From positions 124,001 to 188,000 of the IMG/VR virus record IMGVR_UViG_3300027621_000003: 64,000 nt of DNA; one strand, written 5' to 3'. The translations under genes were made by a program, and so were the position numbers. Under the pieces are notes generated by a model. The model was given only the letters and a program-made list of their open reading frames with translations, did not search any database and was not told the origin of the DNA. Below are positions 6,358 through 21,394 of this stretch, one piece after another; position 1 is the first letter of the stretch; each line of letters starts with the position of its first letter.

Positions 6358-6424
6358 TAGTAAAAATATATTGTTTAGTAAATAAATACAAAAAAACCTG
6401 ATATAAATCAGGTCTTTTTAAATT

Positions 6425-6610
6425 TTATTCACCACTTGGTATAAACATCCATAACAACAAATATGTTATACCAATTGGAAATGGATAAAAAAGTAATACC
6501 ACGGAAAATACACGAAGAAAAATTGGGTCAATATTCATACGGTATGCGATACCAGCACATACACCACCGATTACTCGGTCTACTTTTGGTCTATACATTT
6601 TTTGTTTCAT
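6425..6610 (-). CDS. pspC: PspC-domain membrane protein
   Basis: MYRPKVDRVIGGVCAGIAYRMNIDP..LR PspC signature. Confidence 0.85.
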   Translation of the reverse strand: MKQKMYRPKVDRVIGGVCAGIAYRMNIDPIFLRVFSVVLLFYPFPIGITYLLLWMFIPSGE

Positions 6611-6611
6611 T

Positions 6612-6688
6612 TGGTGGACCCTGTAGGGCTTGAACCTACGACCTACTGATTATGAGTCAGCCGCTCTGACCAACTGAGCTAAGGGTCC
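6612..6688 (-). tRNA. tRNA-Ile2 (CAU, lysidine type)
   Basis: GGACCCT...CTGACTCATAATCAG...GGGTCCACCA; Ile2-type body, encoded CCA. Confidence 0.8.
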
Positions 6689-6717
6689 ATTGTTATACAA
6701 AGATAATAAAAAAATTC

Positions 6718-7140
6718 TTAATCCCACCAATGTTCAATTTTTTGTTCAAGAATTTTAAATAATAAACGTTTAGCTTTATTGTGCTTATCTGTTACCATTT
6801 TAAGAGCTTCAGATGACCGTTTATCTAACTCATAAAACCCATCATAATATGATTCATTTTGTATTTTATCAATTAACCTAACACAAGTCATCATTAACTC
6901 AGCATCACGTTCAGAACTTTCATGAGAACCATATTTAACAAGATGTTTGGCTTGTTTTTCTAACTTGAATTTTAATACCTGAAAAACATAATGGTGGTCC
7001 CAATCCCTATCTTTCCATATTATCCAAAACCATTTATATAGGTTCTGAACTCCATACTTAATGTATTTGTGTTGGTTGGGTAGTTCCCATCTTACCCATC
7101 TGTAAAGTTTCCAATACCATTCGTTATATTCTGTGTTCAT
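6718..7140 (-). CDS. hypothetical phage protein (Trp-rich, DRDWD motif)
   Basis: 140-aa ORF inside tRNA operon 1. Confidence 0.6.
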   Translation of the reverse strand: MNTEYNEWYWKLYRWVRWELPNQHKYIKYGVQNLYKWFWIIWKDRDWDHHYVFQVLKFKLEKQAKHLVKYGSHESSERDAELMMTCVRLIDKIQNESYYDGFYELDKRSSEALKMVTDKHNKAKRLLFKILEQKIEHWWD

Positions 7141-7154
7141 AGTTATGATTTTAG

Positions 7155-7228
7155 TAGACGAGAAGGGACTTGAACCCCCAACCTTGATGATATAAGCATC
7201 CTGCTCTAACCTGTTGAGCTACCCGTCC
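7155..7228 (-). tRNA. tRNA-Ile (UAU)
   Basis: Cloverleaf; anticodon arm GATG-CTTATAT-CATC. Confidence 0.85.
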
Positions 7229-7233
7229 AAATA

Positions 7234-7419
7234 TTAGTTGAAATGAGTACAATCCCCTTGAGTATTATCCCACGGGCATATGTACATTTCTGGTTGGGTA
7301 TGTATGTAAACTCCATCAACACCAAAGTTGTCATTTTCACCATACAACCCAAGTGACTGACTTAATTCTGTCAATTCGGTTAAAAAATCTTCCTGCGTCA
7401 TTTGAGTCTTGGGGTCCAT
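7234..7419 (-). CDS. hypothetical protein
   Basis: 61-aa ORF between tRNAs. Confidence 0.45.
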   Translation of the reverse strand: MDPKTQMTQEDFLTELTELSQSLGLYGENDNFGVDGVYIHTQPEMYICPWDNTQGDCTHFN

Positions 7420-7432
7420 GATTATTGTGTTT

Positions 7433-7509
7433 TGGAGCCTGAAGACGGACTCGAACCGCCAACCCCCTGATTACAAGTCAGGTGCTCTACCAATTAAAGC
7501 TATTCAGGC
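7433..7509 (-). tRNA. tRNA-Thr (UGU)
   Basis: CCTGA-CTTGTAA-TCAGG; CCA encoded. Confidence 0.9.
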
Positions 7510-7528
7510 ATTTATGTTTTAATATATA

Positions 7529-7816
7529 TTACTTTCCTTGTTTTTTGTAAACATAAGTGATGGTATCACCAATGTTGTACTTCCTCAAAGAAGTAAACTC
7601 ACTGCTGTCTGACATGAAATACTTGTACTTCCTGTCAAGTTCAATTGTGCTGTGAGGTGGCAATTGAACCATTGAATCAATAACGAACTTTTCAACTACA
7701 TCACCTTTTTCAATCAAAGGTTTCTGTTTACAAGCTCCTAACATAGTGGCAAGAATAATAGATAAAATAATCCATAAGGAAAAATAAAGTCGGGGGTCTT
7801 TTAATATGTTTTTCAT
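7529..7816 (-). CDS. putative membrane/lipoprotein
   Basis: TM followed by LGAC; start placed after TACCTTTG promoter. Confidence 0.55.
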   Translation of the reverse strand: MKNILKDPRLYFSLWIILSIILATMLGACKQKPLIEKGDVVEKFVIDSMVQLPPHSTIELDRKYKYFMSDSSEFTSLRKYNIGDTITYVYKKQGK

Positions 7817-7817
7817 G

Positions 7818-8369
7818 TTACAAAGGTAATATATTTTTTTCAAAGTTTTTTACATAATTGTCAACTATGTGTTGAATTTCATTTTGATATCTACTATGAA
7901 CATACTGATGATGTGTTGGACATAATGGTACCAAGTTTTTTGGTTCGTTATTTTGGTGATTATTGTCATAATGATGGATAGTCACAATTTTATTTTCACT
8001 ACAAATAATACATTCTTTTTTGTGATAATTAAAACCAATTCTTCTATAACCGTTACGTTCTTGACTATCACCAAAATTTCCCCAATTTGGGTTATTTTCA
8101 CCACTTCTAAAAAAGGTGTTTGAACAAGAATAAGAACATGTTGTTCTTTCTTCTTTCCCTCCAACTTTTGTTTCAAATTGAATATCACAAACAGGACACA
8201 ATTTAATAACTGATTGGTATTTTATTTCTCGACTTCTTAAATGCGAAACGTCAATTTTATTTTCAACAATGAAATTTTCAAATTTTTTTCGAGTTTTTCC
8301 ATTGTCAAAACCATAGAGTTTTTTAATAGCTTCAGCCCTTGTCTTAGAATTTTTAATTATTTCTACCAT
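7818..8369 (-). CDS. HNH homing endonuclease
   Basis: CPVC/CSYSC zinc motifs and CIIC...IHHYD.NH.NN..NL..LCPTHH. Confidence 0.8.
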   Translation of the reverse strand: MVEIIKNSKTRAEAIKKLYGFDNGKTRKKFENFIVENKIDVSHLRSREIKYQSVIKLCPVCDIQFETKVGGKEERTTCSYSCSNTFFRSGENNPNWGNFGDSQERNGYRRIGFNYHKKECIICSENKIVTIHHYDNNHQNNEPKNLVPLCPTHHQYVHSRYQNEIQHIVDNYVKNFEKNILPL

Positions 8370-8431
8370 ATATAATAAATATATTGATTGTCGTTAAAAT
8401 TAGATTTGGTCAAATATTTTTTTAACGATTG

Positions 8432-8507
8432 TAGCGTAGACTGGATTCGAACCAGCGTGCCTCTGCTCCCAAAGCAGATGAGATAAACCTGACTCCTCTA
8501 CTACGCT
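8432..8507 (-). tRNA. tRNA-Pro (UGG)
   Basis: TCTGC-TTTGGGA-GCAGA. Confidence 0.85.
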
Positions 8508-8516
8508 ATTTGTTTG

Positions 8517-8586
8517 TGGACACTGTGGGAATCGAACCCATACGTTCTGATTGCAAATCAAACGGTCTGCCGTTGACATCAGGCCC
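8517..8586 (-). tRNA. tRNA-Ala (UGC), atypical
   Basis: TTTGA-TTTGCAA-TCAGA with G3:U70; irregular acceptor and D arms. Confidence 0.65.
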
Positions 8587-8597
8587 TTTTATTTTTG

Positions 8598-8669
8598 CGG
8601 TCCCACCGGGAATCGAACCCGGCACTTTGCCGTGACAGGGCAATATTATAGCCGATTAACTACAGGACC
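8598..8669 (-). tRNA. tRNA-Asp (GUC)
   Basis: TTGCC-CTGTCAC-GGCAA. Confidence 0.9.
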
Positions 8670-8737
8670 GTAAGTTAGTAAACCCGGGCCCAACAAGCCG
8701 TGATAAACACGGAAGGGCCCTTTTTAAGATTTACTTT

Positions 8738-8813
8738 TGGAGCGAGAGACCAGGTTCGAACTGGCGACCCTCAGTTTGGTAAACTGATGCTCTACCGACT
8801 GAGCTACTCTCGC
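8738..8813 (-). tRNA. tRNA-Gly (ACC)
   Basis: GCGAGAG acceptor, U73, CCA; anticodon arm TCAGT-TTACCAA-ACTGA. Confidence 0.85.
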
Positions 8814-8818
8814 TTTTG

Positions 8819-8890
8819 AGCGAGTGGGGAGAATCGAACTCCCATATCCAGCTTGGAAGGCTGGAGTAATAGCCTTTATACTACACTCGC
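8819..8890 (-). tRNA. tRNA-Gly (UCC)
   Basis: CCAGC-CTTCCAA-GCTGG. Confidence 0.9.
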
Positions 8891-8982
8891 TTTTTTCGAG
8901 TCAGAGTAGTCACGGCCACCTCTTATCCTTCTGACTCTTGATGTAAAAGTGGCCAATGTGGCACGACCCAAGTTACATCCAT

Positions 8983-9056
8983 TGGTTGCGGACCCGAGAC
9001 TCGAACTCGGAACTATGGGTTATGAGCCCATTATGTTACCATTACACCAACCCGCG
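8983..9056 (-). tRNA. initiator tRNA-fMet (CAU)
   Basis: C1:A72 mismatch, three G-C pairs in anticodon stem, CCA. Confidence 0.9.
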
Positions 9057-9065
9057 ATTTATTTG

Positions 9066-9137
9066 TACTCGGTAGGGGAGTCGAACCCCTCTTTCCAGGA
9101 TGAAAACCTGGCATCCTAACCGATAGATGAACCGAGC
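9066..9137 (-). tRNA. tRNA-Glu (UUC)
   Basis: CCAGG-TTTTCAT-CCTGG. Confidence 0.9.
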
Positions 9138-9150
9138 AATTATTTTTTTC

Positions 9151-9171
9151 TTACCAATACGTCAAAGAACT
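9151..9171 (-). promoter_or_regulatory. boxA-like antitermination element
   Basis: AGTTCTTTGACGTATTGGTAA, identical to 16088..16108, directly upstream of the first tRNA. Confidence 0.7.
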
Positions 9172-9242
9172 TTTTTGTTCTGTTGTCTTATTCAACAACA
9201 ATACAAAGTTAATACATTTTTTTAATACTACCAAACAAACAC

Positions 9243-9295: not shown

Positions 9296-9364
9296 TTATC
9301 CCATCTCCACTTTGGAAGTATCAGCCTCTGTTGCTGGTGTGCCGAATATGAATATGGTTTTCAT
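9296..9364 (-). CDS. leader peptide of tRNA operon 1 (22 aa, MKTIFIFGTPATEADTSKVEMG)
   Basis: Hand-translated; last codons GAGATGGG are complementary to the terminator 5' arm. Confidence 0.7.
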   Translation of the reverse strand: MKTIFIFGTPATEADTSKVEMG

Positions 9365-9421
9365 TGAATGTATTATTATTTGATTTCTTATTAAATATAA
9401 TAAACTTTTAAAAAGTGTCAA

Positions 9422-12278: not shown

Positions 12279-12307
12279 ATATATAAATACTCACAATTAT
12301 GTATTTG

Positions 12308-12381
12308 TAGCGAGGGAGGGAATTGAACCCCCCACCTCAGGGTTATGAATCCTGCGCTCTAACCGACTGAGCTACCTCGCC
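12308..12381 (-). tRNA. elongator tRNA-Met (CAU)
   Basis: GGCGAGG...CAGGATTCATAACCCTG. Confidence 0.85.
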
Positions 12382-12385
12382 ATGA

Positions 12386-12997
12386 TTATTCTATGGTTTC
12401 ACCATCCAATGTATAAATCATACATGAGGATGATTTCCCTGAATTATCCAAACAATCTTCAATTTCTAATGGTTGTCCTTTAAAAAAGACTTGACCGATA
12501 AAATCATAATCACCTTCTGGTGTTCCTATTGAACCTGATGAGTACGTAAAATCTGTCGGAGTTGGTACTGTGTCAGACTCAAGTGAAAATTTAAACATTC
12601 CACCTTTGTTTTCATCAATACTCAAATAGACATTTGTTGGTCCTTCTTTTTGAGGAAACGCATTATACTCTCTGTACTCATACTTTTCTTCAAAATCTTC
12701 AATTGTTTCGTATAAGTCGGCGGTTTCATCAATACCAAACTCTAATACTTTATTTTCTTCTTCATCAAGAAGTTCAAAGTGCATTGTACCATTGTCAAAC
12801 GCTTCGGTTTTGTGAAAGATTTCACCGTCCCAAAAATCAAGGTCCAAAAGTTCATCTAAATCAAAACGGATTTCATGAAGTTCAGAAAAACCTTCCTCTT
12901 CCATTTTATCTTTAATAATTTGTATTTGTTCGTCAGTTAGAGATTTGCAGACTGCCTCAAAAGACCATCCATAAGTGTTAAGTGTGTATTTAGCCAT
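12386..12997 (-). CDS. hypothetical acidic protein
   Basis: 203-aa ORF with TATATTTG promoter. Confidence 0.6.
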   Translation of the reverse strand: MAKYTLNTYGWSFEAVCKSLTDEQIQIIKDKMEEEGFSELHEIRFDLDELLDLDFWDGEIFHKTEAFDNGTMHFELLDEEENKVLEFGIDETADLYETIEDFEEKYEYREYNAFPQKEGPTNVYLSIDENKGGMFKFSLESDTVPTPTDFTYSSGSIGTPEGDYDFIGQVFFKGQPLEIEDCLDNSGKSSSCMIYTLDGETIE

Positions 12998-13032
12998 ACG
13001 GCAAATATAAATTATAAACCGTGATTCGTCAA

Positions 13033-13470
13033 TTATTTTAAGAATCTTAATTTGTATAATGTTGAGTAAATCAATTCTTGAACTCCATCAATTTGATTTT
13101 GAATATAAGATTCTTTAACCGATGTCCTATTTTTTTCAATATTTTCATCTAATTCTTTAAAATAAGCTATTACTTGTTCTGTTGATTTGTAATCAACTGT
13201 TTTAATTGTTTTATAACCAGTAATTATTTCGTATTTTCCTTGATAACTTTCAACAATATTATCAACTAACCCATCAATTCCATCATAATATTCTTGTAAA
13301 GCTTTATGTTCAGAAAATGATGATTGTGATTTTGTCTGCCAATGAAAGATATGTACTTGAGACTGTGAATGTAATAATGTTGCAATCATATCAACCACAT
13401 CGGCAGTTTCAGTTGCAGGATTTGATTTTGATGATAAACCATTTAAAAGGTCTCTTTTTGTAATTTCCAT
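13033..13470 (-). CDS. ferritin/Dps-like four-helix protein
   Basis: HIFHW...EHKALQEYYD...VD..VE pattern. Confidence 0.6.
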   Translation of the reverse strand: MEITKRDLLNGLSSKSNPATETADVVDMIATLLHSQSQVHIFHWQTKSQSSFSEHKALQEYYDGIDGLVDNIVESYQGKYEIITGYKTIKTVDYKSTEQVIAYFKELDENIEKNRTSVKESYIQNQIDGVQELIYSTLYKLRFLK

Positions 13471-13491
13471 ATCAATAAATATACTGATGTG

Positions 13492-14175
13492 TTAATATGT
13501 CTTAAACTTCATTTCTTTGATAACACAATTTCCAATTTTTTTATGTCCTGATGGTGCCATATGACAAAGTCCATCCCAACAATCCGATTTTGTAATCACA
13601 CGAGTATTAATCACTTTTCCACCAACAATTTTTTTTATCAATTCATTCTGAAATTTGGAATACTTAACTCTGTAGTTTGGATTTTCTGGTGTGTTGATGC
13701 AAATTAATGGGTCAAATCCGGTAATTACAACTGGTTTAACACCTTTGGAATTACAAATGTTTACAATTTTTTGAATGTTCTTTACTGCGCTTTCAATGGT
13801 GATTTTGCTGTTATACATATCATTGGCACCTCCATAGATAAAACAATAATCTAAACCATTGTGAATAGATTCTTTTGCTCTTTCTAACATCCAACCTGTG
13901 GTTTTTCCACCAACAGATATGTTATTCATTCTCATTTTTGTTTTGTTGGATAGAGTATATTGCCAACCATTAGGATTTGATGTGTGAGAATCACCAATAA
14001 AAAGAACGTATTTTCCTTTTACATCCACAATTGTGTCTTGTGGTTTAATTTTTACCGTATCAATTTTAACGGTATCTTCAATTTGTTTATTGTTACCCCA
14101 AACTTTCCAACTTGTTATGAATCCTAAAATTGCTATAACAATGACCAAAATAATTGCTTTTACTAAATTTTTCAT
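13492..14175 (-). CDS. SGNH/GDSL hydrolase, membrane-anchored
   Basis: IGDSHT, GG.TT, YGGAND and DGLCH blocks. Confidence 0.85.
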   Translation of the reverse strand: MKNLVKAIILVIVIAILGFITSWKVWGNNKQIEDTVKIDTVKIKPQDTIVDVKGKYVLFIGDSHTSNPNGWQYTLSNKTKMRMNNISVGGKTTGWMLERAKESIHNGLDYCFIYGGANDMYNSKITIESAVKNIQKIVNICNSKGVKPVVITGFDPLICINTPENPNYRVKYSKFQNELIKKIVGGKVINTRVITKSDCWDGLCHMAPSGHKKIGNCVIKEMKFKTY

Positions 14176-14281
14176 ATTTTTTATTAAAAAACACTCTCAA
14201 GCTCTCTACTCCCAGTTCCGAGGAATTGTATCTTACTTAGCCCGTCTCACCACTGTGTGGGTACTTGAGTTTATGTTTTTG

Positions 14282-14359
14282 TAGTCAGGACAGGATTCGA
14301 ACCTGTAACACCGGTTTGACCACTTACGTGGTTGCGTCTATCCATTCCGCCACCTGACT
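14282..14359 (-). ncRNA. tRNA-like RNA (Leu-type body, no canonical anticodon loop)
   Basis: AGTCAGG/CCTGACT acceptor, GGCGGAATGG..AGACGC D arm, TTCGAAT T loop; anticodon arm ACCAC-GTAA-GTGGT. Confidence 0.7.
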
Positions 14360-14436
14360 ATAGTTGTCAGTCTCTCCTGACCGTCACCCCCACTCCGAAG
14401 GTATGAGCCTTCATATGTGATGCTGGGTTAGCTTTG

Positions 14437-14510
14437 TGGTGTGAACGGGAATCGAACCACGTGGCACGTAGGGTTTCAATCTACTGCTCTACCTGCTGAG
14501 CTACCACACC
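14437..14510 (-). tRNA. tRNA-Phe (GAA), second copy
   Basis: GTAGA-TTGAAAC-CCTAC; slightly irregular T stem. Confidence 0.75.
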
Positions 14511-14537
14511 ATTATTGTTATACAAAGTTAAAATATA

Positions 14538-15014
14538 TTATCCAATTTTCCAAGCTCCAATTATGTGTTTTTTTATTTTTTTACCGTCCTCAGGGTTACC
14601 AATAACAACACCATCTTTAATGGTAAATGCGTGACCTTTAACAACCACCATGTAAGAACCAACAGGATATTTTTTAATGAACGAAAATGTTGTTGTTGCT
14701 CTTAATTTTTTAACACCTTTAACTACAACATAATACAACATGGTATTGTGTTCCTCAGAAATAATTTGAACGTCTTTACCGTTAATTTGTTTACCATTCT
14801 TTGATAACAAATTCATGCCAGTACCAAGTAAAAAAGTACCTTTACCATTTTTTCTCTTGAAAGTTTCTTTAACAAATTGGTGGGCGGAATCATAGTCCAT
14901 ATCCGCGGCTGATGCAATTGCCCTAACAACACAATCGTTTTTTTCAGATTTGGCAATTTTTGATTCAGTATATCCTTTGATTGCGTTTGAAGATGATATA
15001 AACCCCTTTTCCAT
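14538..15014 (-). CDS. hypothetical phage protein (NDCVVRA...GHAF motif, possible Cys/His dyad)
   Basis: Start moved to MEKG after TATATTTG promoter. Confidence 0.55.
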   Translation of the reverse strand: MEKGFISSSNAIKGYTESKIAKSEKNDCVVRAIASAADMDYDSAHQFVKETFKRKNGKGTFLLGTGMNLLSKNGKQINGKDVQIISEEHNTMLYYVVVKGVKKLRATTTFSFIKKYPVGSYMVVVKGHAFTIKDGVVIGNPEDGKKIKKHIIGAWKIG

Positions 15015-15060
15015 ACTACAAATATACAACAGGTATTTGACATTACAAAAAAATATTTTG

Positions 15061-15133
15061 CTCCCCGGATAGGATTTGAACCTATGACCTATCGCTTAAC
15101 AGGCGAGTGCTCTAACCACTGAGCTACCGAGGA
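15061..15133 (-). tRNA. tRNA-Asn (GUU)
   Basis: TCGC-CTGTTAA-GCGA. Confidence 0.9.
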
Positions 15134-15139
15134 ATGTTG

Positions 15140-15221
15140 TACCAAAGGTGGGAGTCGAACCCACACGTCTTTAAGACATTAGTTTCTAAGACTAATGCGG
15201 CTACCGTTACGCCACTTTGGT
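15140..15221 (-). tRNA. tRNA-Leu (UAG)
   Basis: TTAGT-CTTAGAA-ACTAA, long variable arm. Confidence 0.9.
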
Positions 15222-15227
15222 ATTTTG

Positions 15228-15298
15228 CGCAAGTGGAAGGACTCGAACCCTCGCCAAAAGTTTTGGAGACCTTTATGCTACCATTACACCACACTTAC
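15228..15298 (-). tRNA. tRNA-Trp (CCA)
   Basis: AAGGT-CTCCAAA-ACTTT, G73. Confidence 0.9.
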
Positions 15299-15305
15299 GT
15301 ATTTG

Positions 15306-15380
15306 TGATTCCTGAGGGACTCGAACCCCCACATCTTCTCGTCCGTAGCGAGATGTTTTATCCAATTAAACTAAGGAACC
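15306..15380 (-). tRNA. tRNA-Arg (ACG)
   Basis: TCTCG-CTACGGA-CGAGA. Confidence 0.9.
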
Positions 15381-15383
15381 ATT

Positions 15384-15458
15384 TGGGGTGACTGATGGGA
15401 TTCGAACCCACGACACTCGGCACCACAAGCCGATGCTCTACCACTGAACTACAGTCAC
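15384..15458 (-). tRNA. tRNA-His (GUG)
   Basis: TCGGC-TTGTGGT-GCCGA, C73, CCA; G-1 not encoded. Confidence 0.9.
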
Positions 15459-15460
15459 AG

Positions 15461-15534
15461 AGTCCATAGTTGGAATCGAACCAACGAATAACAGTTTTGC
15501 AGACTGTCCCTTTGAACCGCTCAGGCATATGGAC
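15461..15534 (-). tRNA. tRNA-Cys (GCA)
   Basis: ACAGT-CTGCAAA-ACTGT, U73. Confidence 0.9.
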
Positions 15535-15542
15535 TTATATTC

Positions 15543-15589
15543 TATAATCCTCCAAATCTAGTAAAAAAAGTGAGTTTTGGAGGATTATA
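15543..15589. repeat. 14-bp inverted repeat hairpin in tRNA spacer
   Basis: tataatcctccaaa ... tttggaggattata. Confidence 0.7.
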
Positions 15590-15596
15590 AGTTTTG

Positions 15597-15678
15597 TGCC
15601 AGCAGTAGGACTCGAACCTACGAACTCAAATGAGAGCGGGTTTACAATCCGCCGCAATTGCCGCTATGCGATACTGGC
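15597..15678 (-). tRNA. tRNA-Tyr (GUA)
   Basis: GCGGA-TTGTAAA-CCCGC, long variable arm. Confidence 0.9.
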
Positions 15679-15685
15679 ATTTTTG

Positions 15686-15758
15686 TCTTTCCTGTTGGAT
15701 TTGAACCAACGACATCTTGGATGTAAGCCAAGTGCTCTTCCAACTGAGCTAAGGAAAG
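15686..15758 (-). tRNA. tRNA-Val (UAC)
   Basis: CTTGG-CTTACAT-CCAAG. Confidence 0.9.
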
Positions 15759-15764
15759 ATATTG

Positions 15765-15838
15765 TGACCCCATCGGGACTCGAACCCGAAACCCCCGTGT
15801 TAAAAGCACGGTGCTCTAGCCAATTGAGCTATAAGGTC
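15765..15838 (-). tRNA. tRNA-Lys (UUU)
   Basis: CCGTG-CTTTTAA-CACGG. Confidence 0.9.
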
Positions 15839-15844
15839 ATATTG

Positions 15845-15915
15845 TTACCCCTGAAGGATTCGAACCTCCACTAAGTGGACCAAAACCACTCGTCCTGCCG
15901 TTAGACGAAAGGGTA
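15845..15915 (-). tRNA. tRNA-Gln (UUG)
   Basis: AGTGG-TTTTGGT-CCACT. Confidence 0.9.
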
Positions 15916-15920
15916 ATTTA

Positions 15921-15997
15921 TGGTTGGTGATACAGGACTTGAACCTGTGACCCCTACGGTATCAGCGTAGTGCTCTAACCAACTGAGCTAATCACCA
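15921..15997 (-). tRNA. tRNA-Ile (GAU)
   Basis: CTACG-CTGATAC-CGTAG, CCA. Confidence 0.9.
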
Positions 15998-16006
15998 ATG
16001 TATTTG

Positions 16007-16079
16007 TGGGGTAGACAGGTATCGAACCTGTTCCTTCGGATTTTCAGTCCGGCGCAATGACCTCATCTGCCACTACCCC
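16007..16079 (-). tRNA. tRNA-Phe (GAA)
   Basis: CGGA-CTGAAAA-TCCG. Confidence 0.85.
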
Positions 16080-16087
16080 ATTTTTGG

Positions 16088-16108
16088 TTACCAATACGTC
16101 AAAGAACT
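16088..16108 (-). promoter_or_regulatory. boxA-like antitermination element
   Basis: Identical 21-mer to 9151..9171. Confidence 0.7.
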
Positions 16109-16109
16109 T

Positions 16110-16146
16110 AAAAACAAAAAAACCCGAACCTTGTGAGTTCGGGTTT
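16110..16146 (-). terminator. attenuator terminator of tRNA operon 2
   Basis: AAACCCGAAC-TCACAAG-GTTCGGGTTTTTTTGTTTTT. Confidence 0.8.
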
Positions 16147-16167
16147 CCTTTTTTAGGCTACTACGTG

Positions 16168-16263
16168 TTAACTTATAACACCCGAACTTGAAAATACGCG
16201 AAGATACCAATTCTGACAGAATTGAATGACATGTTTCACGATTTGTTTATTTACGAGTTTCAT
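16168..16263 (-). CDS. leader peptide of tRNA operon 2 (31 aa, MKLVNKQIVKHVIQFCQNWYLRVFSSSGVIS)
   Basis: Hand-translated; downstream of TATCTTTG promoter; 3' end carries AGTTCGGGT, complementary to the terminator 5' arm. Confidence 0.8.
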   Translation of the reverse strand: MKLVNKQIVKHVIQFCQNWYLRVFSSSGVIS

Positions 16264-16312
16264 TGTGTTTAGTATTAAATATGGTACAAAGATACAAAAG
16301 TTTCTTGATATG

Positions 16313-16573
16313 TTAAATATTTTTTTCGTTTTTATTTTTTAATAACCAGTTGGCTCCGACTACAAACCCTTGTTTCCATTTTGTAATATCATCATCACAC
16401 ATCCCTTCACTGTATTGTTGATATTTGTCATCAGCGCCAATATGAATCATTTGTTGGATTCTTTTTTCTATAAAACCGGGCTTAGTTTCAAACTCAGGTT
16501 CTCCCAATTCAACCATACCATTTTTCCACTTTTTCCAAGTGTCAAAATCTTTTAAATCTTCAATGTTAATCAT
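16313..16573 (-). CDS. hypothetical protein
   Basis: 86-aa ORF. Confidence 0.5.
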   Translation of the reverse strand: MINIEDLKDFDTWKKWKNGMVELGEPEFETKPGFIEKRIQQMIHIGADDKYQQYSEGMCDDDITKWKQGFVVGANWLLKNKNEKNI

Positions 16574-16586
16574 ATTATTTTTTTAA

Positions 16587-17003
16587 TTATAACCTGTCTT
16601 TTACAATATTCAATAAGTCCTCATTAAAAGGTACTCCATGTCTTGAATCAAATTCATCTTCCAATCTTTCAGTTGACATATCATTTTTCTTCAATAAAAT
16701 ATACGCTCCCAAATCAGCTTCAATTTCATCTTTTTCAGACCTCGGTCCGTTGTGTCCCAATAACAAATGTGAGATTTCATGAGCTTCAATAAATTTCATG
16801 TCATCCATAGTTAAACCATCATCACCCAAAAATATTTCACCGTCAATAAAAATTGTTTTGAATTCTGGTGCAAGAAATCCATAACCGTATTGGTCAAAAA
16901 TTTTTCTCATTGCACTATAATTTGGATTTTCTTTGAATACCAAATTAATATTCATGTTTGGGATAAAACTACTTTTGTACGCTATGATGTCTTGGTCTTC
17001 CAT
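16587..17003 (-). CDS. HExxH metallopeptidase-like (ImmA/IrrE-like)
   Basis: AHEISHLLLGH...EIEAD. Confidence 0.65.
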   Translation of the reverse strand: MEDQDIIAYKSSFIPNMNINLVFKENPNYSAMRKIFDQYGYGFLAPEFKTIFIDGEIFLGDDGLTMDDMKFIEAHEISHLLLGHNGPRSEKDEIEADLGAYILLKKNDMSTERLEDEFDSRHGVPFNEDLLNIVKDRL

Positions 17004-17005
17004 TT

Positions 17006-17569
17006 TTATAATAAATATTCCAATACTTTTTCTTTTATGCCCGTTTGTTTAATGCCTTCTTTATTTTCGGGTGTTAATACAAAGTTCTTCAATCCCCAAG
17101 TCTTATCGTGCACATCCGTTAATGACATATTCAAATCATCAATTGCCACCCAATGTGTGATTACAGGATTCTGACCAATATATTGCGCAATCTCCAAACT
17201 ACGAGTTTGTTCTAACTCCGATTTGTTGTGCCATGGGAAATCATCATAATCATCATATAAGATAGAATCGGTAAAGGCAATTGGTTTTTTAATAATACCT
17301 TTTGATTCGTAATATTCTCCCATCTCCTCAACTGTCGCCCAATTTTTCCAATCTGAAGATACAACAATTTCGGCACCTGTTTCCTCTAAGATTTCATTAA
17401 GAACTTTAACCGCCTCCTCATCAAAATTATCAAAACGATACTCAACGGGCATACTTAAAGTACTCATAGACAATTTACGTTTACCCCAACTTTTTTGTTT
17501 TTTGAAACGATTACCCCAATTATCAGACAGACATATCACACCATCGTGGTCCAAAAATATAACTTTCAT
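17006..17569 (-). CDS. HAD-superfamily phosphatase (Swiss-army-knife RNA-repair type)
   Basis: MKVIFLDHDGV, IVVSSDW and WVAIDD motifs. Confidence 0.8.
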   Translation of the reverse strand: MKVIFLDHDGVICLSDNWGNRFKKQKSWGKRKLSMSTLSMPVEYRFDNFDEEAVKVLNEILEETGAEIVVSSDWKNWATVEEMGEYYESKGIIKKPIAFTDSILYDDYDDFPWHNKSELEQTRSLEIAQYIGQNPVITHWVAIDDLNMSLTDVHDKTWGLKNFVLTPENKEGIKQTGIKEKVLEYLL

Positions 17570-17677
17570 AACACAAAGATAATAAAAGTTATTCTTGTAT
17601 CAAAGAAATATCGTAATAAAAACTATTGTATCATATTTTACAATTTGACAAATATGTTGTATTTTTTTTAAAAAACT

Positions 17678-18394
17678 ATGTCATATTTAAATACACCAAT
17701 TCCCGTAGTAGAGGCTTACATTAGAGGAAACTTCTTAAGAAACCAAGAAGATTCTCACGATAAAAAATTCCCTTGTTACATTTTTGGAATGTCGTCAATT
17801 CCAGCACAAGCACCATTATTTCACTTTATCATGGAGGATGGGGCATTATGGTGGAGAATGCCAATACAGGCATTTTGTTGGAAAGAAGATGCACCTGAAC
17901 AAGAACTTGATGAATTAGTGTTATGGGATTCATTTTCATATCATGTTGGAGCAACAGCATTCCCTATGTTAAAAAACAAGACATGTAAATTCATATCAAG
18001 ACGTAGAGTAGAATATACGGGCAAATATTTATTTACCTTAGATTGGGGGTCATCTTCAGACATGGGAGACACAGATTTTGGATTAAGTGAATTCCCATCA
18101 CAACACAAATGTGGTCATTTCATTGCCATGGATAATGGAAACTTTGCAATACAACCAAACAATAGGTTTGTGCTTCATGACCCATCGTTCACAGTAAAAG
18201 ATGAATTGGTTATACATAGAAAATACAATACCACATTATGGACTGCTGAAAGAAATGGAAGATGGGTCACACCTGATACTGACATTATGAATTACGACCA
18301 TACCGATTTAGAAAAAGGTGAGAGTAATAAAAAACGGTCAGATGAATATAATAAAATTGATTCCGAACGTTTAAAGAATGAAGGTTCAATTTAA
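17678..18394 (+). CDS. hypothetical phage protein
   Basis: 238 aa; HKCGH..MDNGNFAIQPNNR motif. Confidence 0.65.
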   Translation: MSYLNTPIPVVEAYIRGNFLRNQEDSHDKKFPCYIFGMSSIPAQAPLFHFIMEDGALWWRMPIQAFCWKEDAPEQELDELVLWDSFSYHVGATAFPMLKNKTCKFISRRRVEYTGKYLFTLDWGSSSDMGDTDFGLSEFPSQHKCGHFIAMDNGNFAIQPNNRFVLHDPSFTVKDELVIHRKYNTTLWTAERNGRWVTPDTDIMNYDHTDLEKGESNKKRSDEYNKIDSERLKNEGSI

Positions 18395-19007
18395 CCACCA
18401 AAATGGATTCTTTTTAGACGGGAGAATATTTTGTGAAGTTTACGGTATTGCGGAAAACGAATCAAATGATGAGTTATTAAATTCAGGATGGTTACCGTCA
18501 ATGGAGGAAAAAAATATTTGGTATCAATCAAGAAGTCATAGAATAGAACTATCTAATTTTGAGATATCAAAAAAACGAAGACACATAATTAAAAAGTTAA
18601 CCTGTGAAGTAAGTGATTATATTCAAAACCAAGAAATAGATGATTTCTTTCAAGAATACTACAATGATAAGGATTTTGATATTATGGATGATTATAATAA
18701 CTGTTCAAAGTTTTTTGAACCAAAAATATTGTACTTAAGATTAGAAGGTAAATTAGTTGCGGTGGGAAGATACTTAGAAAATAAAAAGTCTAATGTATTT
18801 TTAAATCTTGCTTATGATAACAATAATTTAAAGTTATCTCTTGGTACTAATTTATTTTACATACTCGCAGATATTACCAAGAAACAAAATAAAGATTATT
18901 TGTATATCTATGAATCATATGATGATAGTTTTTCATATAAACAAAAATTACCTAACTTAAATTTTTGGAGTGGGACTAAATGGATATCAAATGCTATTTA
19001 TAAATAA
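18378..19007 (+). CDS. aminoacyl-tRNA-protein transferase-like (Bpt/ATE family, GNAT fold)
   Basis: LNSGW, WYQSRSHRI, LVAVG, Y...KLSLGT, YLYIY and YKQ patterns. Confidence 0.55.
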   Translation: MKVQFNHQNGFFLDGRIFCEVYGIAENESNDELLNSGWLPSMEEKNIWYQSRSHRIELSNFEISKKRRHIIKKLTCEVSDYIQNQEIDDFFQEYYNDKDFDIMDDYNNCSKFFEPKILYLRLEGKLVAVGRYLENKKSNVFLNLAYDNNNLKLSLGTNLFYILADITKKQNKDYLYIYESYDDSFSYKQKLPNLNFWSGTKWISNAIYK

Positions 19008-19009
19008 AA

Positions 19010-19732
19010 ATGGAAGAGGGTAATTTTAAAGTATTAGTTAATACAATTGAAGAACTAAAAAAATATAAAAAAGTTCTTTTATTAACTTGCTCTAACAGAG
19101 GTGAAGAAATTTCAAAAGAAGAAACACCAAAATCTACAATTTTAGCAAAAGTAATACATAACAATCTTAGTAATTCTACAATAATAGATGTTACTAAACT
19201 TAAAATTTATCCATGTGAGGGAAATGTTTCTTTAATGGAAGGAAACGTTTGTGGTGTTAAAGATGCTCTTTTAGACGACCCTGAGAAAAATCCATCAGGA
19301 TATCATAGATGTTGGGCTTCAATTCATAATCCTGACGATGAACTTTGGAAAATAAGCAAAGAACTTTTTGAATCTGACTGTGTAGTTTTTTTCGCGTCAG
19401 TTAGATGGGGAGCTGCTAATATGTTTTATCAAAAACTTATAGAAAGACTAAATTGGATTAATAATAGATATATCCCATATGGTGAAGACAACATAATAAA
19501 AAATACAACATCAGGTTTTATAATTGTTGGACAACACAAATATGGTGATGATATTGCCGAACTTCAGTATAACAATCACGAATATTATGGTTTTAAAGTT
19601 AACAAAAAACTATATTGGAATTGGAACGCCGAAAATATTGAATACGATGATGAAACCTTACAAGGATATATTGAAAGTTATCCCGAATTTTTTAAAGATT
19701 TTAAGATAAAAAAGAAACCTGTTCTTGATTAA
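19010..19732 (+). CDS. flavodoxin-like / NAD(P)H-dependent FMN reductase family
   Basis: TCSNR, IYPCEG..S, SDCVVFFASVRWG and KLIERL motifs. Confidence 0.75.
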   Translation: MEEGNFKVLVNTIEELKKYKKVLLLTCSNRGEEISKEETPKSTILAKVIHNNLSNSTIIDVTKLKIYPCEGNVSLMEGNVCGVKDALLDDPEKNPSGYHRCWASIHNPDDELWKISKELFESDCVVFFASVRWGAANMFYQKLIERLNWINNRYIPYGEDNIIKNTTSGFIIVGQHKYGDDIAELQYNNHEYYGFKVNKKLYWNWNAENIEYDDETLQGYIESYPEFFKDFKIKKKPVLD

Positions 19733-20403
19733 AACTCTTCTTGATGGAAGACAACATCTTCATATGCATATTCATTCCAAGTAAATTTTAATGTAATTGT
19801 ACCCGCTCTTGAATCAATCATGAAATTTCCAAAAGAACCTTCATCATTTTCCCAACCACCATACACTCCCAACATATCGTATAAATAATCATCTAATCCT
19901 GGTACACTATCTACGTTTCTTTCTGGTTTACTACCAGAATCAACATATAAGGTACCATCAATATATCCATCATCACCACCACCATTAAACGTAACTTCAG
20001 CAAATGGAAATATGTCCTCTTGTTTAAGAAAATTCATAATCTCTTTTAGATTTTCATCATCTTCTTCACTTCTTTCAGTTTCACCTGAAGGTCCGTCAAC
20101 AATTTCTTGATAAGTTCCACTAATAGTAACTGTTCTTGTTTGGGGATATAACGCAAAAGTTATTGCATTCAAATTATCTTCATCAAAATCTGAAGCATTT
20201 TCACCAACATATTCGGTAATTATCTCACTAATATCAAATGGTAATTTTTGTGGTGTTTCATGTTTTTCAATTCCACAACCAAAATTTCTACCGTTATATG
20301 GTGTGTGATTCCAAGGGTCAACATCCATCTCAAGATACTCACAACCACGAGAAGATGCGTATTTGGATATTAATTCAAAAATTGATTTTTGTTTTGGGGT
20401 CAT
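19729..20403 (-). CDS. hypothetical acidic protein (DUF6878-like)
   Basis: FNGGGDDG and GWENDEGSFG motifs. Confidence 0.55.
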   Translation of the reverse strand: MTPKQKSIFELISKYASSRGCEYLEMDVDPWNHTPYNGRNFGCGIEKHETPQKLPFDISEIITEYVGENASDFDEDNLNAITFALYPQTRTVTISGTYQEIVDGPSGETERSEEDDENLKEIMNFLKQEDIFPFAEVTFNGGGDDGYIDGTLYVDSGSKPERNVDSVPGLDDYLYDMLGVYGGWENDEGSFGNFMIDSRAGTITLKFTWNEYAYEDVVFHQEEF

Positions 20404-20414
20404 AGTAATAAATA

Positions 20415-20768
20415 TCAATCATCTACTTTGAGGTCCAATGTTCTTAACATCCACATTGGTTTCTTTTCAGCTTGTAAAGCATCTATCCAATCTTTTGCCG
20501 TTGGAATATAATTAAAACAATCTTCTTTCACGTGTTGTTCACCAACATACCTGGTGTAGACAGTTTTACCGTCACTATTAACAAATGATTTACCAAAGAT
20601 TTTTTCCATCTCAAAGATACCTTCTGAGTGGTGACGAAACATTCTATGATTTGAATGTCCAACCCACGCCTTTGTTTCATCTAACCAATCGTGTAAATGA
20701 ATATAATCTTCAAATTTTCCACCAAATTTTTTGGCTGAAGATTTTGCATGAATTAAAGGATGTGCCAT
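20415..20768 (-). CDS. His-rich hypothetical protein (DUF6915-like)
   Basis: MAHPLIHAKSSAKKFGG...HRMFRHH..G...EQHVKED. Confidence 0.65.
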   Translation of the reverse strand: MAHPLIHAKSSAKKFGGKFEDYIHLHDWLDETKAWVGHSNHRMFRHHSEGIFEMEKIFGKSFVNSDGKTVYTRYVGEQHVKEDCFNYIPTAKDWIDALQAEKKPMWMLRTLDLKVDD

Positions 20769-20899: not shown

Positions 20900-20903
20900 T
20901 TTG

Positions 20904-20977: not shown

Positions 20978-20980
20978 ATT

Positions 20981-21334: not shown

Positions 21335-21394
21335 GTGATACAAAGATAAATCAAATATTTGACCTTTTCAAGGAATACACCTATTTATGTCTAA

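Follow-up and report, generated by a model that had tools for sequence, protein, structure and literature searches.

A likely leader-peptide attenuator whose codons match the tRNA genes downstream of it in an uncultured phage

Why would a short open reading frame (ORF) in front of a phage tRNA array contain codons for exactly those amino acids whose tRNAs are encoded behind it? The role of phage tRNAs has been argued over for fifty years, the candidates being codon compensation, substitution for host tRNAs that have been degraded and evasion of anticodon nucleases, and to our knowledge almost nothing is established about how phage tRNA genes are regulated. The window analysed in this study is a 64,000-nucleotide stretch of the IMG/VR virus record IMGVR_UViG_3300027621_000003, which belongs to a huge Bacteroidota phage, and in it such an ORF (leader 1) lies ahead of twelve tRNA genes. 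The locus, here called unit 1, is likely to be a ribosome-mediated (leader-peptide) transcription attenuator that controls the phage tRNA operon, although this reading has no experimental evidence behind it. Its parts and their order can be read directly, and the elements are as follows.

16287..16294, minus strand: promoter -7 box TATCTTTG, of the Bacteroidota type TAnnTTTG, 23 nt 5' of the leader 1 ATG
16168..16263, minus strand: leader ORF 1, 31 codons plus stop, ATG at 16263-16261, translation MKLVNKQIVKHVIQFCQNWYLRVFSSSGVIS
16192..16260, minus strand: sensor codons 2-24 of leader 1, using all twelve and only K, L, V, N, Q, I, H, F, C, W, Y and R
16180..16188, minus strand: antiterminator segment AGTTCGGGT, codons 26-28 of leader 1, complementary to the terminator 5' arm
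16110..16150, minus strand: intrinsic terminator 1, a 15-pair hairpin (16150-16116) with core AAACCCGAAC/GTTCGGGTTT followed by a T-run around 16110-16116, from the terminator scan and the full-length fold
16088..16107, minus strand: boxA-like element GTTCTTTGACGTATTGGTAA, a 20-mer (copy 1)
15060..16079, minus strand: tRNA array 1, twelve genes on which ARAGORN and Rfam agree

The array runs in the order Phe-GAA, Ile-GAU, Gln-UUG, Lys-UUU, Val-UAC, Tyr-GUA, Cys-GCA, His-GUG, Arg-ACG, Trp-CCA, Leu-UAG and Asn-GUU, and the amino acids of leader codons 2-24 are exactly those twelve (12/12 covered). If codons are drawn with the amino-acid frequencies of the window's long ORFs, the probability that 23 codons all fall inside the set and also cover all twelve members is 3.8e-8, a statistic that was picked post hoc with the data already seen. 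When no sub-range is chosen, the whole ORF (12/12 covered, 25/30 codons in the set) gives P = 4.7e-5, and only two of the window's 181 ORFs of 25-40 amino acids cover all twelve. The preliminary description of this locus, made without any comparison to databases, had placed the promoter, ORF, terminator, boxA and twelve tRNAs on the minus strand and had claimed that codons 2-24 use all and only the twelve amino acids; the positions and the codon claim all held on re-reading. Its further claim of a match at the isoacceptor level needs two small corrections: the leucine codons CTC and CTT agree with tRNA-Leu(UAG) only at the level of the four-codon box and not by strict wobble, and Ile-GAU cannot decode codon 30, an isoleucine ATA that lies in the structural tail of the ORF.

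The antiterminator segment AGTTCGGGT is the exact complement of ACCCGAACT in the 5' arm of terminator 1, as the preliminary description had stated, and the predicted duplex between the segment and its own terminator arm amounts to -15.5 kcal/mol. Terminator 1 is the top-ranked terminator-like site in 6000-23000 and lies 17 nt past the leader stop codon; no promoter-like box was seen between it and the first tRNA when the sequence was read. Two mutually exclusive folds were obtained, in agreement with the folding check that had been suggested at the outset: the full-length leader folds into the terminator, while in a transcript that ends before the 3' arm the antiterminator is both the minimum-energy and the centroid fold. 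Codons 2-22 are all in the set (21/21), and a ribosome stalled within them would be far enough upstream to leave the antiterminator free.

Downstream of the terminator, the 20-mer occurs in exactly two copies in the window, where 0.02 would be expected, and the identical box stands between tRNA-Ala and the 23S rRNA gene in the 16S-23S spacers of rRNA operons in Polaribacter, Tenacibaculum, Niabella, Sediminibacterium and other Bacteroidota. By this identity and by its equivalent position the element is boxA, as had been called before; binding of NusB/S10 is inferred from sequence alone. A role of the box as a promoter was considered and rejected, given that the first tRNA begins 8-14 nt downstream of it and that the same box stands in rRNA spacers.

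The second copy of boxA belongs to a second unit that the preliminary description had overlooked, and unit 1 is not unique but a member of a widespread family found in dozens of unrelated phages. Unit 2 has the same design and lies ahead of a second tRNA operon whose amino-acid set is complementary to that of the first.

9394..9421, minus strand: promoter-like site of unit 2, TTGACA, 16 nt, TATATT (11/12 matches), and also TATATTTA
9296..9364, minus strand: leader ORF 2, 22 codons plus stop, MKTIFIFGTPATEADTSKVEMG, from the ORF list
9300..9307, minus strand: antiterminator segment 2, GAGATGGG, ending 1 nt 5' of the stop codon
9238..9274, minus strand: intrinsic terminator 2, AAAAACCCATCTC/GGATGGGTTTTT then a T-run around 9238-9246, from the terminator scan and fold
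9204..9211, minus strand: second promoter-like box TAACTTTG, followed by a hairpin seen in the fold, between terminator 2 and boxA 2
9151..9170, minus strand: boxA copy 2, the identical 20-mer by sequence match
6389..9137, minus strand: tRNA operon 2, with a closing terminator at 6420-6389

Operon 2 encodes Glu, Met, Gly(UCC), Gly(ACC), Asp, a weak tRNA-Ala(UGC)-like gene (8517-8586, found by Rfam only at 29.5 bits) and Pro, after which short ORFs alternate with Thr(UGU), Ile(UAU) and Met. Leader 2 covers every amino acid of the downstream tRNAs (7/7, or 8/8 if the weak tRNA-Ala is counted), and its isoleucine codon is ATA both times, in agreement with tRNA-Ile(UAU). The duplex of antiterminator 2 with its own terminator arm CCCATCTC is predicted at -15.3 kcal/mol (rank 1 of 37), and the full leader again folds into the terminator while the truncated transcript folds into the antiterminator. 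Precision for units 1 and 2 is 1.00 and 0.67 with their own arrays compared to 0.10 and 0.33 when the arrays are swapped, and coverage is 1.00 and 1.00 compared to 0.29 and 0.33. It is possible that the TAACTTTG box downstream of terminator 2 drives unregulated transcription of array 2 and so bypasses the attenuator, its promoter activity being inferred from sequence alone.

In total, 55 distinct leaders in 26 clusters were recovered from IMG/VR contigs, one contig of a metagenome-assembled genome (MAG) and the 735-kb uncultured phage LR756501.1, the last reached by a 31-nt box search of the GenBank phage collection. All phages with these leaders are uncultured. The comparison loci were fetched through the box or the terminator arm and never through leader content, so that an artefact of locus choice is unlikely. 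The final clustering of leaders was deliberately generous (40% identity), a conservative choice that merges the leader 1 family with the related family of leader L003, and an array was defined as genes on the same strand separated by no more than 1500 nt, with a cut wherever another attenuator followed, which is a rule of thumb and not a mapped transcript. Of 79 distinct regions that precede tRNA-proximal terminators, 70 contained a short ORF, compared to 10.9 +/- 3.0 in shuffles, and 12 of 23 leader clusters had the motif TAnnTTT[GA] 15-60 nt 5' of the ATG, where about 10% would be expected.

Across the family, leader composition tracks the downstream tRNA set. Sensor-region precision was 0.753 compared to 0.556 for shuffled pairings of leaders and arrays (z 9.1; 26 clusters), coverage was 0.889 compared to 0.671 (z 9.2; 26 clusters), and none of 20,000 permutations attained the observed precision or coverage. 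An amino acid appeared in the leader in 231 of the 242 cases in which its tRNA was in the array and in 113 of the 198 in which it was not; for tryptophan the corresponding figures were 13/13 and 1/9, and for histidine 11/11 and 2/11. In-set codons made up 69% of the sensor region compared to 52% of the structural tail (P = 2e-5). The codon family (CTN/TTR, CGN/AGR, TCN/AGY, ATY/ATA) fits the array tRNA in 45 of 63 leader codons, compared to 27.2 expected from phage codon usage (P = 5e-6). There are exceptions to the match: most leaders include some amino acids without an array tRNA, and some arrays are only partly covered (for example, 17/20 in L134). As to the structural elements, the duplex between the ORF tail and its own terminator arm averages -12.2 kcal/mol; with foreign arms the average is -8.4, and the ORF head gives -5.2 (P < 5e-5). 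The antiterminator ends 1-25 nt before the stop codon, always in the last codons, and the terminator lies 17-35 nt after the stop.

Comparison of related phages, which had been named as a test, shows that leader codons change along with tRNA content. Among homologues of leader 1, L272 has no Tyr or Leu codons and its Tyr and Leu tRNAs have been relocated 3.8 kb away under their own promoter; in L264, His is gone from the leader and tRNA-His from the array, while Met has been gained in the leader and tRNA-Met in the array, and Cys is present without a tRNA-Cys in the array; in L279 the Gln and His positions are exchanged and the set is unchanged. In the related family, L016 differs from L003 by the joint loss of tRNA-Ala and all three Ala codons and by the joint gain of tRNA-Ser(GCU) and an AGT codon. 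The homologous and analogous loci retain the ORF and a compensating antiterminator/terminator pair as the codons shift.

These observations suggest the following mechanism, in which translation of the ORF, the direction of the switch and the feedback are all inferred. Transcription would initiate at the unit's own promoter and the short ORF would come first on the RNA, its sensor codons amounting to one or a few for each tRNA encoded downstream. When every sensor codon is decoded quickly, the ribosome would trail the RNA polymerase to the end of the ORF, where it would sit on or beside the antiterminator segment; the terminator hairpin could then form, and transcription would halt before the tRNAs. 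If a charged tRNA is scarce, the ribosome would stall at any of the sensor codons and leave the antiterminator segment free to pair with the emerging 5' arm of the terminator, blocking termination. A polymerase reading through would pass boxA, presumably acquire host processive antitermination factors and transcribe the whole array, and the new tRNAs would relieve the stall, a negative feedback that would maintain decoding capacity for each listed tRNA. The signal sensed would be decoding capacity, that is, charged tRNA, whatever the cause of its drop. It is possible that sensitivity to any single tRNA is modest, with one to four codons per tRNA, far below the runs in the his and leu leaders.

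That stalling leads to read-through is likely; this direction, like the role of ribosome position in forming the alternative structure, is an inference from geometry and folding and not a measurement. With the antiterminator in the final codons and the terminator 17-35 nt past the stop, the layout is one in which termination is favoured by a ribosome that completes the ORF. Some families have their antiterminator 14-25 nt ahead of the stop codon, and a ribosome at the stop would there be expected to cover the segment only partly, separating it from the terminator arm. In the folds of leader 1 the antiterminator segment has no strong upstream partner of the kind called region 1 in the trp leader, for which the relatives were not systematically searched. 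With no clear region 1 partner, an untranslated leader would read through, unlike in the classical model. The preliminary description had assigned the locus to attenuation of the trp/his/ilv type, with termination by a ribosome at the stop codon and read-through upon stalling. The architecture is supported in that the parts are present; the switch is supported by geometry and folding, its direction remaining an inference; and the suggested purpose, a response to anticodon nucleases or starvation, is speculative, with no test data.

Several alternative explanations need to be weighed against attenuation by stalling. One of them, which is very unlikely, is that the same parts serve an opposite or different logic. 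For example, translation might shield the RNA from Rho or a nuclease, in which case stalling would reduce the output of tRNA, or the leader might report global translation capacity. In its favour, the switch direction is only inferred; boxA elements counter Rho in rRNA operons through Nus-factor antitermination; and read-through is predicted for a leader that is not translated, which means that shutting down translation as a whole would activate the unit too. However, a global sensor has no need for a codon per downstream tRNA or for codon families matched to isoacceptors, the position of the antiterminator and terminator relative to the stop codon favours termination by a finishing ribosome, and a boxA that lies downstream of the terminator cannot protect the leader.

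It is similarly very unlikely that host amino-acid starvation is the main signal, with the tRNA genes placed under a starvation-inducible switch, a reading that modifies the main explanation more than it competes with it. Stalling does report charged tRNA, and a missing amino acid cannot be distinguished from a missing tRNA in the sequence. Against this reading, extra tRNA cannot relieve a shortage of amino acids, which would make the feedback pointless, and the codon families track the downstream isoacceptor, beyond the amino acid alone.

A shared codon preference, in which phage tRNAs serve the most-used codons and any phage ORF is rich in them, can be excluded almost completely. In favour of this view, it is often stated that the tRNAs a phage carries follow its codon usage, as in the codon-compensation idea (PMC10264068). 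However, in four phages with two leaders per genome, each leader fits its own array but not that of the other leader (precision 0.77 compared to 0.18 when swapped, coverage 1.00 compared to 0.47). In addition, leaders over-use CGN and CTN codons, which are minority codons in the same phages' own genes, and the L272 leader dropped its Tyr and Leu codons while the phage keeps those tRNAs elsewhere. Finally, the reading of an ordinary small gene with its own terminator beside an independently transcribed tRNA array, matched by chance, can draw on the abundance of short ORFs in AT-rich phage DNA, on the two of 181 ORFs that cover all twelve amino acids and on the promoter-like box after terminator 2, but is virtually ruled out by the whole-ORF probability for unit 1 alone, the recurrence of the design in 26 clusters with a match of z about 8-9, the ORFs in 70 of 79 regions where 10.9 were expected, the specificity of antiterminators for their own terminators and the lack of a promoter-like box between terminator 1 and its first tRNA.

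If attenuation is the correct reading, the class of mechanism is known, and the tRNA target and the many-tRNA sensor are new. The phage leaders share with trpL, hisL, leuL, pheL, thrL and ilvL/ivbL a short ORF near the promoter that carries regulatory codons, together with an intrinsic terminator and an antiterminator that competes with it according to where the ribosome is. In the phage units, as in these operons, what the controlled genes produce would relieve the stall. Sensing of two or three amino acids is already a property of the thr and ilv leaders of enterobacteria. The phage leaders differ in that their targets are tRNA genes and not biosynthetic enzymes, in that their sensors list 4 to 17 amino acids, mostly with one to three codons each and without single-residue runs, and in that only three pairing segments are evident, with the antiterminator inside the ORF 5' of the stop and boxA past the terminator. 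They also differ in setting (Bacteroidota phages) and in having no above-threshold similarity to Rfam leaders. Attenuation at pheM controls phenylalanyl-tRNA synthetase by the supply of charged tRNA, and this leader of E. coli pheST likewise places a component of the translation machinery under a leader peptide that reports charged tRNA; in pheM, a single amino acid is sensed, the target is protein-coding and the gene is cellular. T-box riboswitches also report the state of a specific tRNA through transcription attenuation and control tRNA charging genes, but a T-box binds one uncharged tRNA directly without translation, whereas the phage leader would read many through the ribosome.

Neither databases nor the literature provided a precedent. 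In the GenBank phage collection, blastn with 3.2 kb around unit 1 matched only the tRNA genes of unrelated phages, and leader 1 and the L003 leader as queries gave no match and no cultured relative. At the gathering threshold, Rfam identified tRNAs and a tmRNA only in the window, with no leader family and no T-box. Permissive scans of leaders 1 and 2 added only sub-threshold matches to the Thr, Phe and Trp leaders (again no T-box), the best being Thr_leader with 25.7 bits where the threshold is 55; these reflect the hairpin and T-run alone, the opposite strand scoring similarly. A search of the full-text literature turned up no account of such a circuit, of its tRNA target or of a leader that senses many tRNAs, and the earlier statement that no such attenuator had been described held to that extent.

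The attenuation model would provide a concrete control logic in which a phage measures the decoding of the codons that its own tRNAs read and makes tRNAs only upon shortage, and it would extend leader-peptide attenuation to a new class of target and to a sensor with up to 17 inputs. Few leader-peptide attenuators are known in Bacteroidota, and the model would extend the class to the viruses of this phylum. The leader can also be regarded as a readable label of operon content, through which phage tRNA transcription units could be defined from their sequence and the rewriting of regulatory codons traced through gene gain and loss, and a compact many-input sensor of translation capacity has potential use in synthetic biology. 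A bolder reading, toward which we remain slightly more sceptical than convinced, is that Bacteroidota phages possess a programmable "tRNA inventory" sensor whose ORF is rewritten at each gain or loss of a tRNA gene, such that the loss of any of up to 17 tRNA species, whether through anticodon nucleases of the host, through host shut-off or through the codon demand of the phage itself, would elicit replacement tRNAs by way of the host rRNA antitermination machinery. Were this true, the units would constitute a dedicated circuit for counter-defence and translation homeostasis and the first attenuator known to control tRNA genes.

With respect to the antitermination of rRNA operons by boxA and Nus factors, the identical 20-mer follows each phage terminator, and the phage copies differ in standing ahead of tRNA arrays, downstream of a regulated terminator and in phage DNA. 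The possibility that the whole design is a host feature was rejected: of 120 bacterial loci fetched by the box, 119 had no tRNA array after it, and those inspected were rRNA operons. The sole exception, L228, has the box before a tRNA array, and there a leader is present too.

The unit 1 span, from promoter through tRNA array, covers positions 16294-15060 on the minus strand and contains the following features:

16294-16287, minus: promoter -7 box of the Bacteroidota type, TATCTTTG, read from the sequence
16263-16168, minus: leader ORF 1, ATG start, 31 codons, MKLVNKQIVKHVIQFCQNWYLRVFSSSGVIS
16188-16180, minus: antiterminator segment AGTTCGGGT (codons 26-28), exact complement of ACCCGAACT in the terminator 5' arm
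16150-16110, minus: terminator 1, a 15-pair hairpin and then a T-run, the strongest terminator-like site of the region
16107-16088, minus: 20-mer GTTCTTTGACGTATTGGTAA (boxA)
down to 15060, minus: tRNA array 1 (Phe, Ile-GAU, Gln, Lys, Val, Tyr, Cys, His, Arg-ACG, Trp, Leu-UAG, Asn)

Codons 2-24 of leader 1 encode all twelve amino acids of the array 1 tRNAs and no others. Under a chance model based on amino-acid frequencies in the 54 long ORFs of the window, the probability of 23 codons falling inside this set and covering all twelve is 3.8e-8, for a sub-range picked post hoc; the whole ORF, with no picked sub-range, covers 12/12 with 25/30 codons in the set (P = 4.7e-5). The full leader 1 RNA folds as the terminator, while the transcript lacking the terminator 3' arm adopts the antiterminator fold in both its minimum-energy and centroid structures; no pairing involves the first 36 nt, which contain the start codon. 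The preliminary description had reported this leader and its twelve-tRNA correspondence, which held with every coordinate correct, and had proposed folding the leader to show exclusive terminator and antiterminator structures, both of which were obtained (full and cut transcript, respectively).

A second such unit precedes another tRNA operon in the window:

9421-9394, minus: promoter-like site
9364-9296, minus: leader ORF 2, MKTIFIFGTPATEADTSKVEMG
9307-9300, minus: antiterminator segment 2, GAGATGGG, the complement of CCCATCTC in the terminator 2 5' arm
9274-9238, minus: terminator 2, strong
9170-9151, minus: boxA copy 2, a 20-mer identical to GTTCTTTGACGTATTGGTAA
minus: first tRNAs of operon 2 (Glu, Met, Gly, Gly, Asp, a weak tRNA-Ala(UGC)-like gene, Pro)
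8517-8586, minus: the weak Ala-like tRNA of the preceding line, Rfam only (29.5 bits, at the gathering threshold), not in ARAGORN
minus: later tRNAs of operon 2 amid short ORFs (Thr-UGU, Ile-UAU, Met), with a closing terminator at 6420-6389

The 8517-8586 tRNA has the anticodon loop TTTGCAA, that of Ala-UGC, and two acceptor-stem mismatches; leader 2 contains two Ala codons. All amino acids of the operon 2 tRNAs are present in leader 2, including those of the weak tRNA-Ala and the later Thr, Ile and Met genes. The two leaders split the amino acids between them, each covering 100% of its own array and approximately 30% of the other's, and Ile is encoded by ATA twice in leader 2, fitting tRNA-Ile(UAU), and by ATC/ATT in leader 1, fitting tRNA-Ile(GAU). 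The stretch from terminator 2 to boxA 2 (within 9171-9237, minus) contains an 8-pair hairpin (GUUGUUGA...ACAACAGAAC region) and, at 9211-9204, another promoter-like box, TAACTTTG; nothing like them occurs in the terminator-to-boxA stretch of unit 1. It is possible that transcription from the 9211-9204 box bypasses the attenuator of array 2.

The finding is wider than the single leader first noticed, extending to a family of putative attenuators whose leader codons mirror the tRNA operon behind them. Three scans of the viral collection (exact box; degenerate box; terminator arm plus box) retrieved approximately 160 loci. An automatic search required a one-strand tRNA array, a terminator no more than 450 nt upstream, an ATG ORF of 17-55 codons ending 8-45 nt before the terminator, and an ORF tail/terminator arm duplex of -9 kcal/mol or lower; leader composition was not used. 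This search identified 55 distinct leaders in 26 clusters. Of 79 distinct regions, 70 contain a short ORF; dinucleotide-shuffled sequences gave 10.9 +/- 3.0. Upstream of 12 of 23 leaders there is a TAnnTTT[GA] box (approximately 10% expected), and several leaders without it have TTGACA-type sites instead.

Table. Example leaders from loci retrieved for comparison, with downstream tRNAs and amino acids covered.
L003: leader MKNMNLHIAVIKPMAVCQWYPRAVSGSDQVFS; Pro Pro Lys Cys Trp Leu Val Tyr Ala Gln Met His Arg Ile; 13/13
L008: leader MKNTMTYRLEVVKTKMEGADSLQPDLRVYCNR; Ser Asp Val Glu Thr Lys Met Ala Gly Leu; 10/10
L266: leader MQTQMNHIIENCFSQVAYAKWTGNDRDLGFRS; 17 tRNAs; 17/17
L071: leader MKNKVENMNWSSRRRSSSRFTCSWPHII; Ser Ser Ser Arg Arg Trp Arg; left out of the statistics by the duplex filter
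LR756501.1 (735 kb): leader MNFRIINMIQEQMQQIQNLIGGTISY; Met, Gln x3, Met x3, Ile, Glu x3; 4/4

The correspondence between leaders and arrays was evaluated with one representative per cluster by shuffling leader/array pairings 20,000 times. In the sensor region (the codons ahead of the antiterminator), the fraction of codons with a tRNA for their amino acid downstream was 0.753 (shuffled 0.556 +/- 0.022, z 9.1), and the fraction of downstream amino acids found there was 0.889 (shuffled 0.671 +/- 0.024, z 9.2), rising to 0.957 for the whole ORF (shuffled 0.799, z 8.0); no permutation (0/20,000) reached the observed values. Pooled over 22 complete arrays, an amino acid was present in the leader in 231/242 cases when its tRNA was in the array and in 113/198 when it was not, with the sharpest contrast for rare residues: Trp (13/13 versus 1/9), His (11/11 versus 2/11) and Ala (7/7 versus 4/15). 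In four phages carrying two units on one contig, precision was 0.77 against a leader's own array and 0.18 against its neighbour's, and coverage was 1.00 and 0.47. For Leu, Arg, Ser and Ile, where an array held just one of two isoacceptor families, the leader used that family in 45 of 63 codons, compared to 27.2 predicted from phage codon usage (P = 5e-6). In-set codons made up 69% of those before the antiterminator but only 52% of the structural tail (P = 2e-5), as expected if pairing constrains the tail. Most leaders contain a few unmatched residues, especially Lys, Asn or Thr at codons 2-3.

Homologous loci indicate that codons and tRNAs change together, with imperfections; loss of the composition match while the tRNAs were kept had been named in advance as an outcome that would refute the claim. 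Three leaders (L269, L274, L280) are nearly identical to leader 1, and in L279 (MTLVNKHIVKQFIQFCQNWYVR...) the Gln and His positions are swapped with set and array unchanged. L272 (MKTHVQNIVGFMIDVICQKWFQR...) has no Tyr and Leu codons in its leader, and its tRNA-Leu(UAG) and tRNA-Tyr lie 3.8 kb away, past three opposite-strand genes. This relocated pair (L272 11820-11890, +) is equipped with a TATCTTTG box of its own, a hairpin rich in GC and a boxA-like element that has diverged, TCTTTGAAATGTTGGTGAA. No leader ORF is present there; not all tRNA units in these phages are attenuated. L264 (MKTNFELIMNFAFVAICDKWYQR...) has neither His codon nor tRNA-His and has gained internal Met codons together with two tRNA-Met genes, but retains a Cys codon without tRNA-Cys in the array. 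In L016, of the L003 family, tRNA-Ala and all three Ala codons are lost, and tRNA-Ser(GCU) and an AGT codon are gained. Among relatives of leader 2, an Arg codon occurs only in L118, whose array alone contains tRNA-Arg.

Terminator stems vary by family (CCCGAAC, CCCTGAAC, CCCTAAG, CCCATCTC, CCTGATTC, CCCAATCAG and others), and each family has the matching complement of its own stem in the last codons of the ORF. Mean duplex energy was -12.2 kcal/mol for the ORF tail with its own 5' arm, compared to -8.4 kcal/mol with the arms of other families and -5.2 kcal/mol for the ORF head with its own arm (permutation P < 5e-5). The distance from the end of the antiterminator segment to the stop codon is 1-25 nt, and another 17-35 nt separate the stop codon from the start of the terminator stem.

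The 20-mer GTTCTTTGACGTATTGGTAA occurs exactly twice in the window (0.02 expected). When one genome per bacterial species was scanned with four degenerate positions allowed, matches were mainly in Bacteroidota (Polaribacter, Tenacibaculum, Aequorivita, Niabella, Sediminibacterium, Chitinophagaceae, Bacteroidales), and in the four loci inspected the box sits between the spacer tRNA-Ala and 23S rRNA of an rRNA operon. This gap is the classical place of the spacer boxA; the position therefore supports the original boxA call and fixes the host phylum as Bacteroidota. Only one of 120 bacterial loci, a 1.5-kb stretch (L228), has the box ahead of a tRNA array (Asp, Gly, Ala, Tyr, Tyr, Met), and the leader there contains many Tyr, Gly, Ala, Asp and Met residues. 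Within this sample of loci, the combination of leader, box and tRNA array is a phage feature.

The sequence data establish the components and how they are arranged, the two mutually exclusive folds, and the match between leader codons and tRNAs. The units are likely translation-sensing attenuators of tRNA operons, which supports the interpretation first offered for unit 1; the direction of the switch is inferred and its physiological trigger is not established. A ribosome keeping up with the polymerase would be on the last codons or the stop while the terminator is transcribed, and would cover the antiterminator fully in unit 2 and mostly in unit 1; in families where the segment ends 14-25 nt before the stop, it would stand between segment and terminator arm. 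With the antiterminator blocked, the hairpin would form and transcription would end. A ribosome stalled at a sensor codon (in unit 1 up to approximately codon 22, where its leading edge would just touch the segment) would leave the segment free to pair with the emerging 5' arm, occupying all loop-proximal pairs of the terminator and allowing read-through. By analogy with rRNA operons, the polymerase may then become termination-resistant at boxA for the remaining array. Because the array tRNAs decode the sensor codons, we propose that each unit controls decoding capacity by negative feedback. The small number of codons per tRNA suggests a modest response to any one species.

The mechanism class is classical leader-peptide attenuation. 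In their logic, the phage units come closest to the multivalent thr and ilv leaders and to that of pheST, whose target is a component of the translation machinery. The model predicts that an untranslated leader in these phage units would read through, unlike in the trp paradigm. Leaders 1 and 2 fall into no Rfam family, and Rfam shows no T-box. A 2010 survey knew leader-peptide systems just in Proteobacteria and Actinobacteria, plus its own Firmicutes cases (PMC2965389). No attenuator ahead of phage or cellular tRNA genes was described in the literature searched, which did not cover most subscription journals; within it, the statement in the preliminary description that no described attenuator senses twelve tRNAs together to control a phage tRNA operon held.

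Several features of the leaders and arrays remain as separate observations. Most leaders start with MK[N/T/Q] (L003, L025, L066, L073, L117-L120, L125, L130, L134 and others), and in many, codons 5-8 include the motif [L/K]-H-[I/M] (...ACATAT... in the DNA), even with arrays lacking tRNA-His; common descent or a translation or pausing signal are possible reasons, and both patterns remain unexplained. A CUA-anticodon tRNA (ARAGORN 'Pyl'), which we take to be an amber suppressor, lies just upstream of the leader in L004, L010, L012, L017, L024 and L031 and inside the array in L064, and may hint at TAG stop reassignment in those related phages. Long structured spacers occur within the tRNA arrays (15535-15595, 8670-8737 and 8891-8982, minus), one example being the tRNA-Tyr/tRNA-Cys spacer with its hairpin of approximately 15 pairs (TTATAATCCTCCAAA...TTTGGAGGATTATAG). 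All of them lack a T-run, and they could be processing sites.

The window is part of a 294,914-bp contig (IMGVR_UViG_3300027621_000003) of a huge phage and contains 30 tRNA matches and a tmRNA (Rfam). The surroundings of the tRNA units, which also encode ClpP, an aminotransferase and an HNH endonuclease, contain the following:

3636-4021, plus: full-length, phage-encoded tmRNA (Rfam RF00023, 63.7 bits, E 1.6e-22), not listed by an ARAGORN run on the window
17006-17569, minus: protein of 187 aa, encoded two genes upstream of leader 1, whose HAD domain is that of 'Swiss Army Knife' RNA-repair proteins (PF18143, E 2.9e-20)
14281-14359, minus: tRNA-like gene whose anticodon loop is abnormal (Rfam tRNA, 41.2 bits; ARAGORN '???' with the two-base anticodon 'ta')

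The PF18143 domain raises the possibility of an RNA or tRNA repair function beside the tRNA operons, and this translation-and-repair region fits a phage investing in sustained translation, with the cause of any tRNA depletion not shown. Arginyl-tRNA-protein transferase, an enzyme family that uses aminoacyl-tRNA, is matched weakly and below threshold through its C-terminal domain at 18378-19007 (+) (PF04377, E 0.0019, 19.2 bits versus a cut-off of 25). The tRNA-like gene at 14281-14359 adjoins a second tRNA-Phe gene and follows a promoter box of its own, TAACTTTG.
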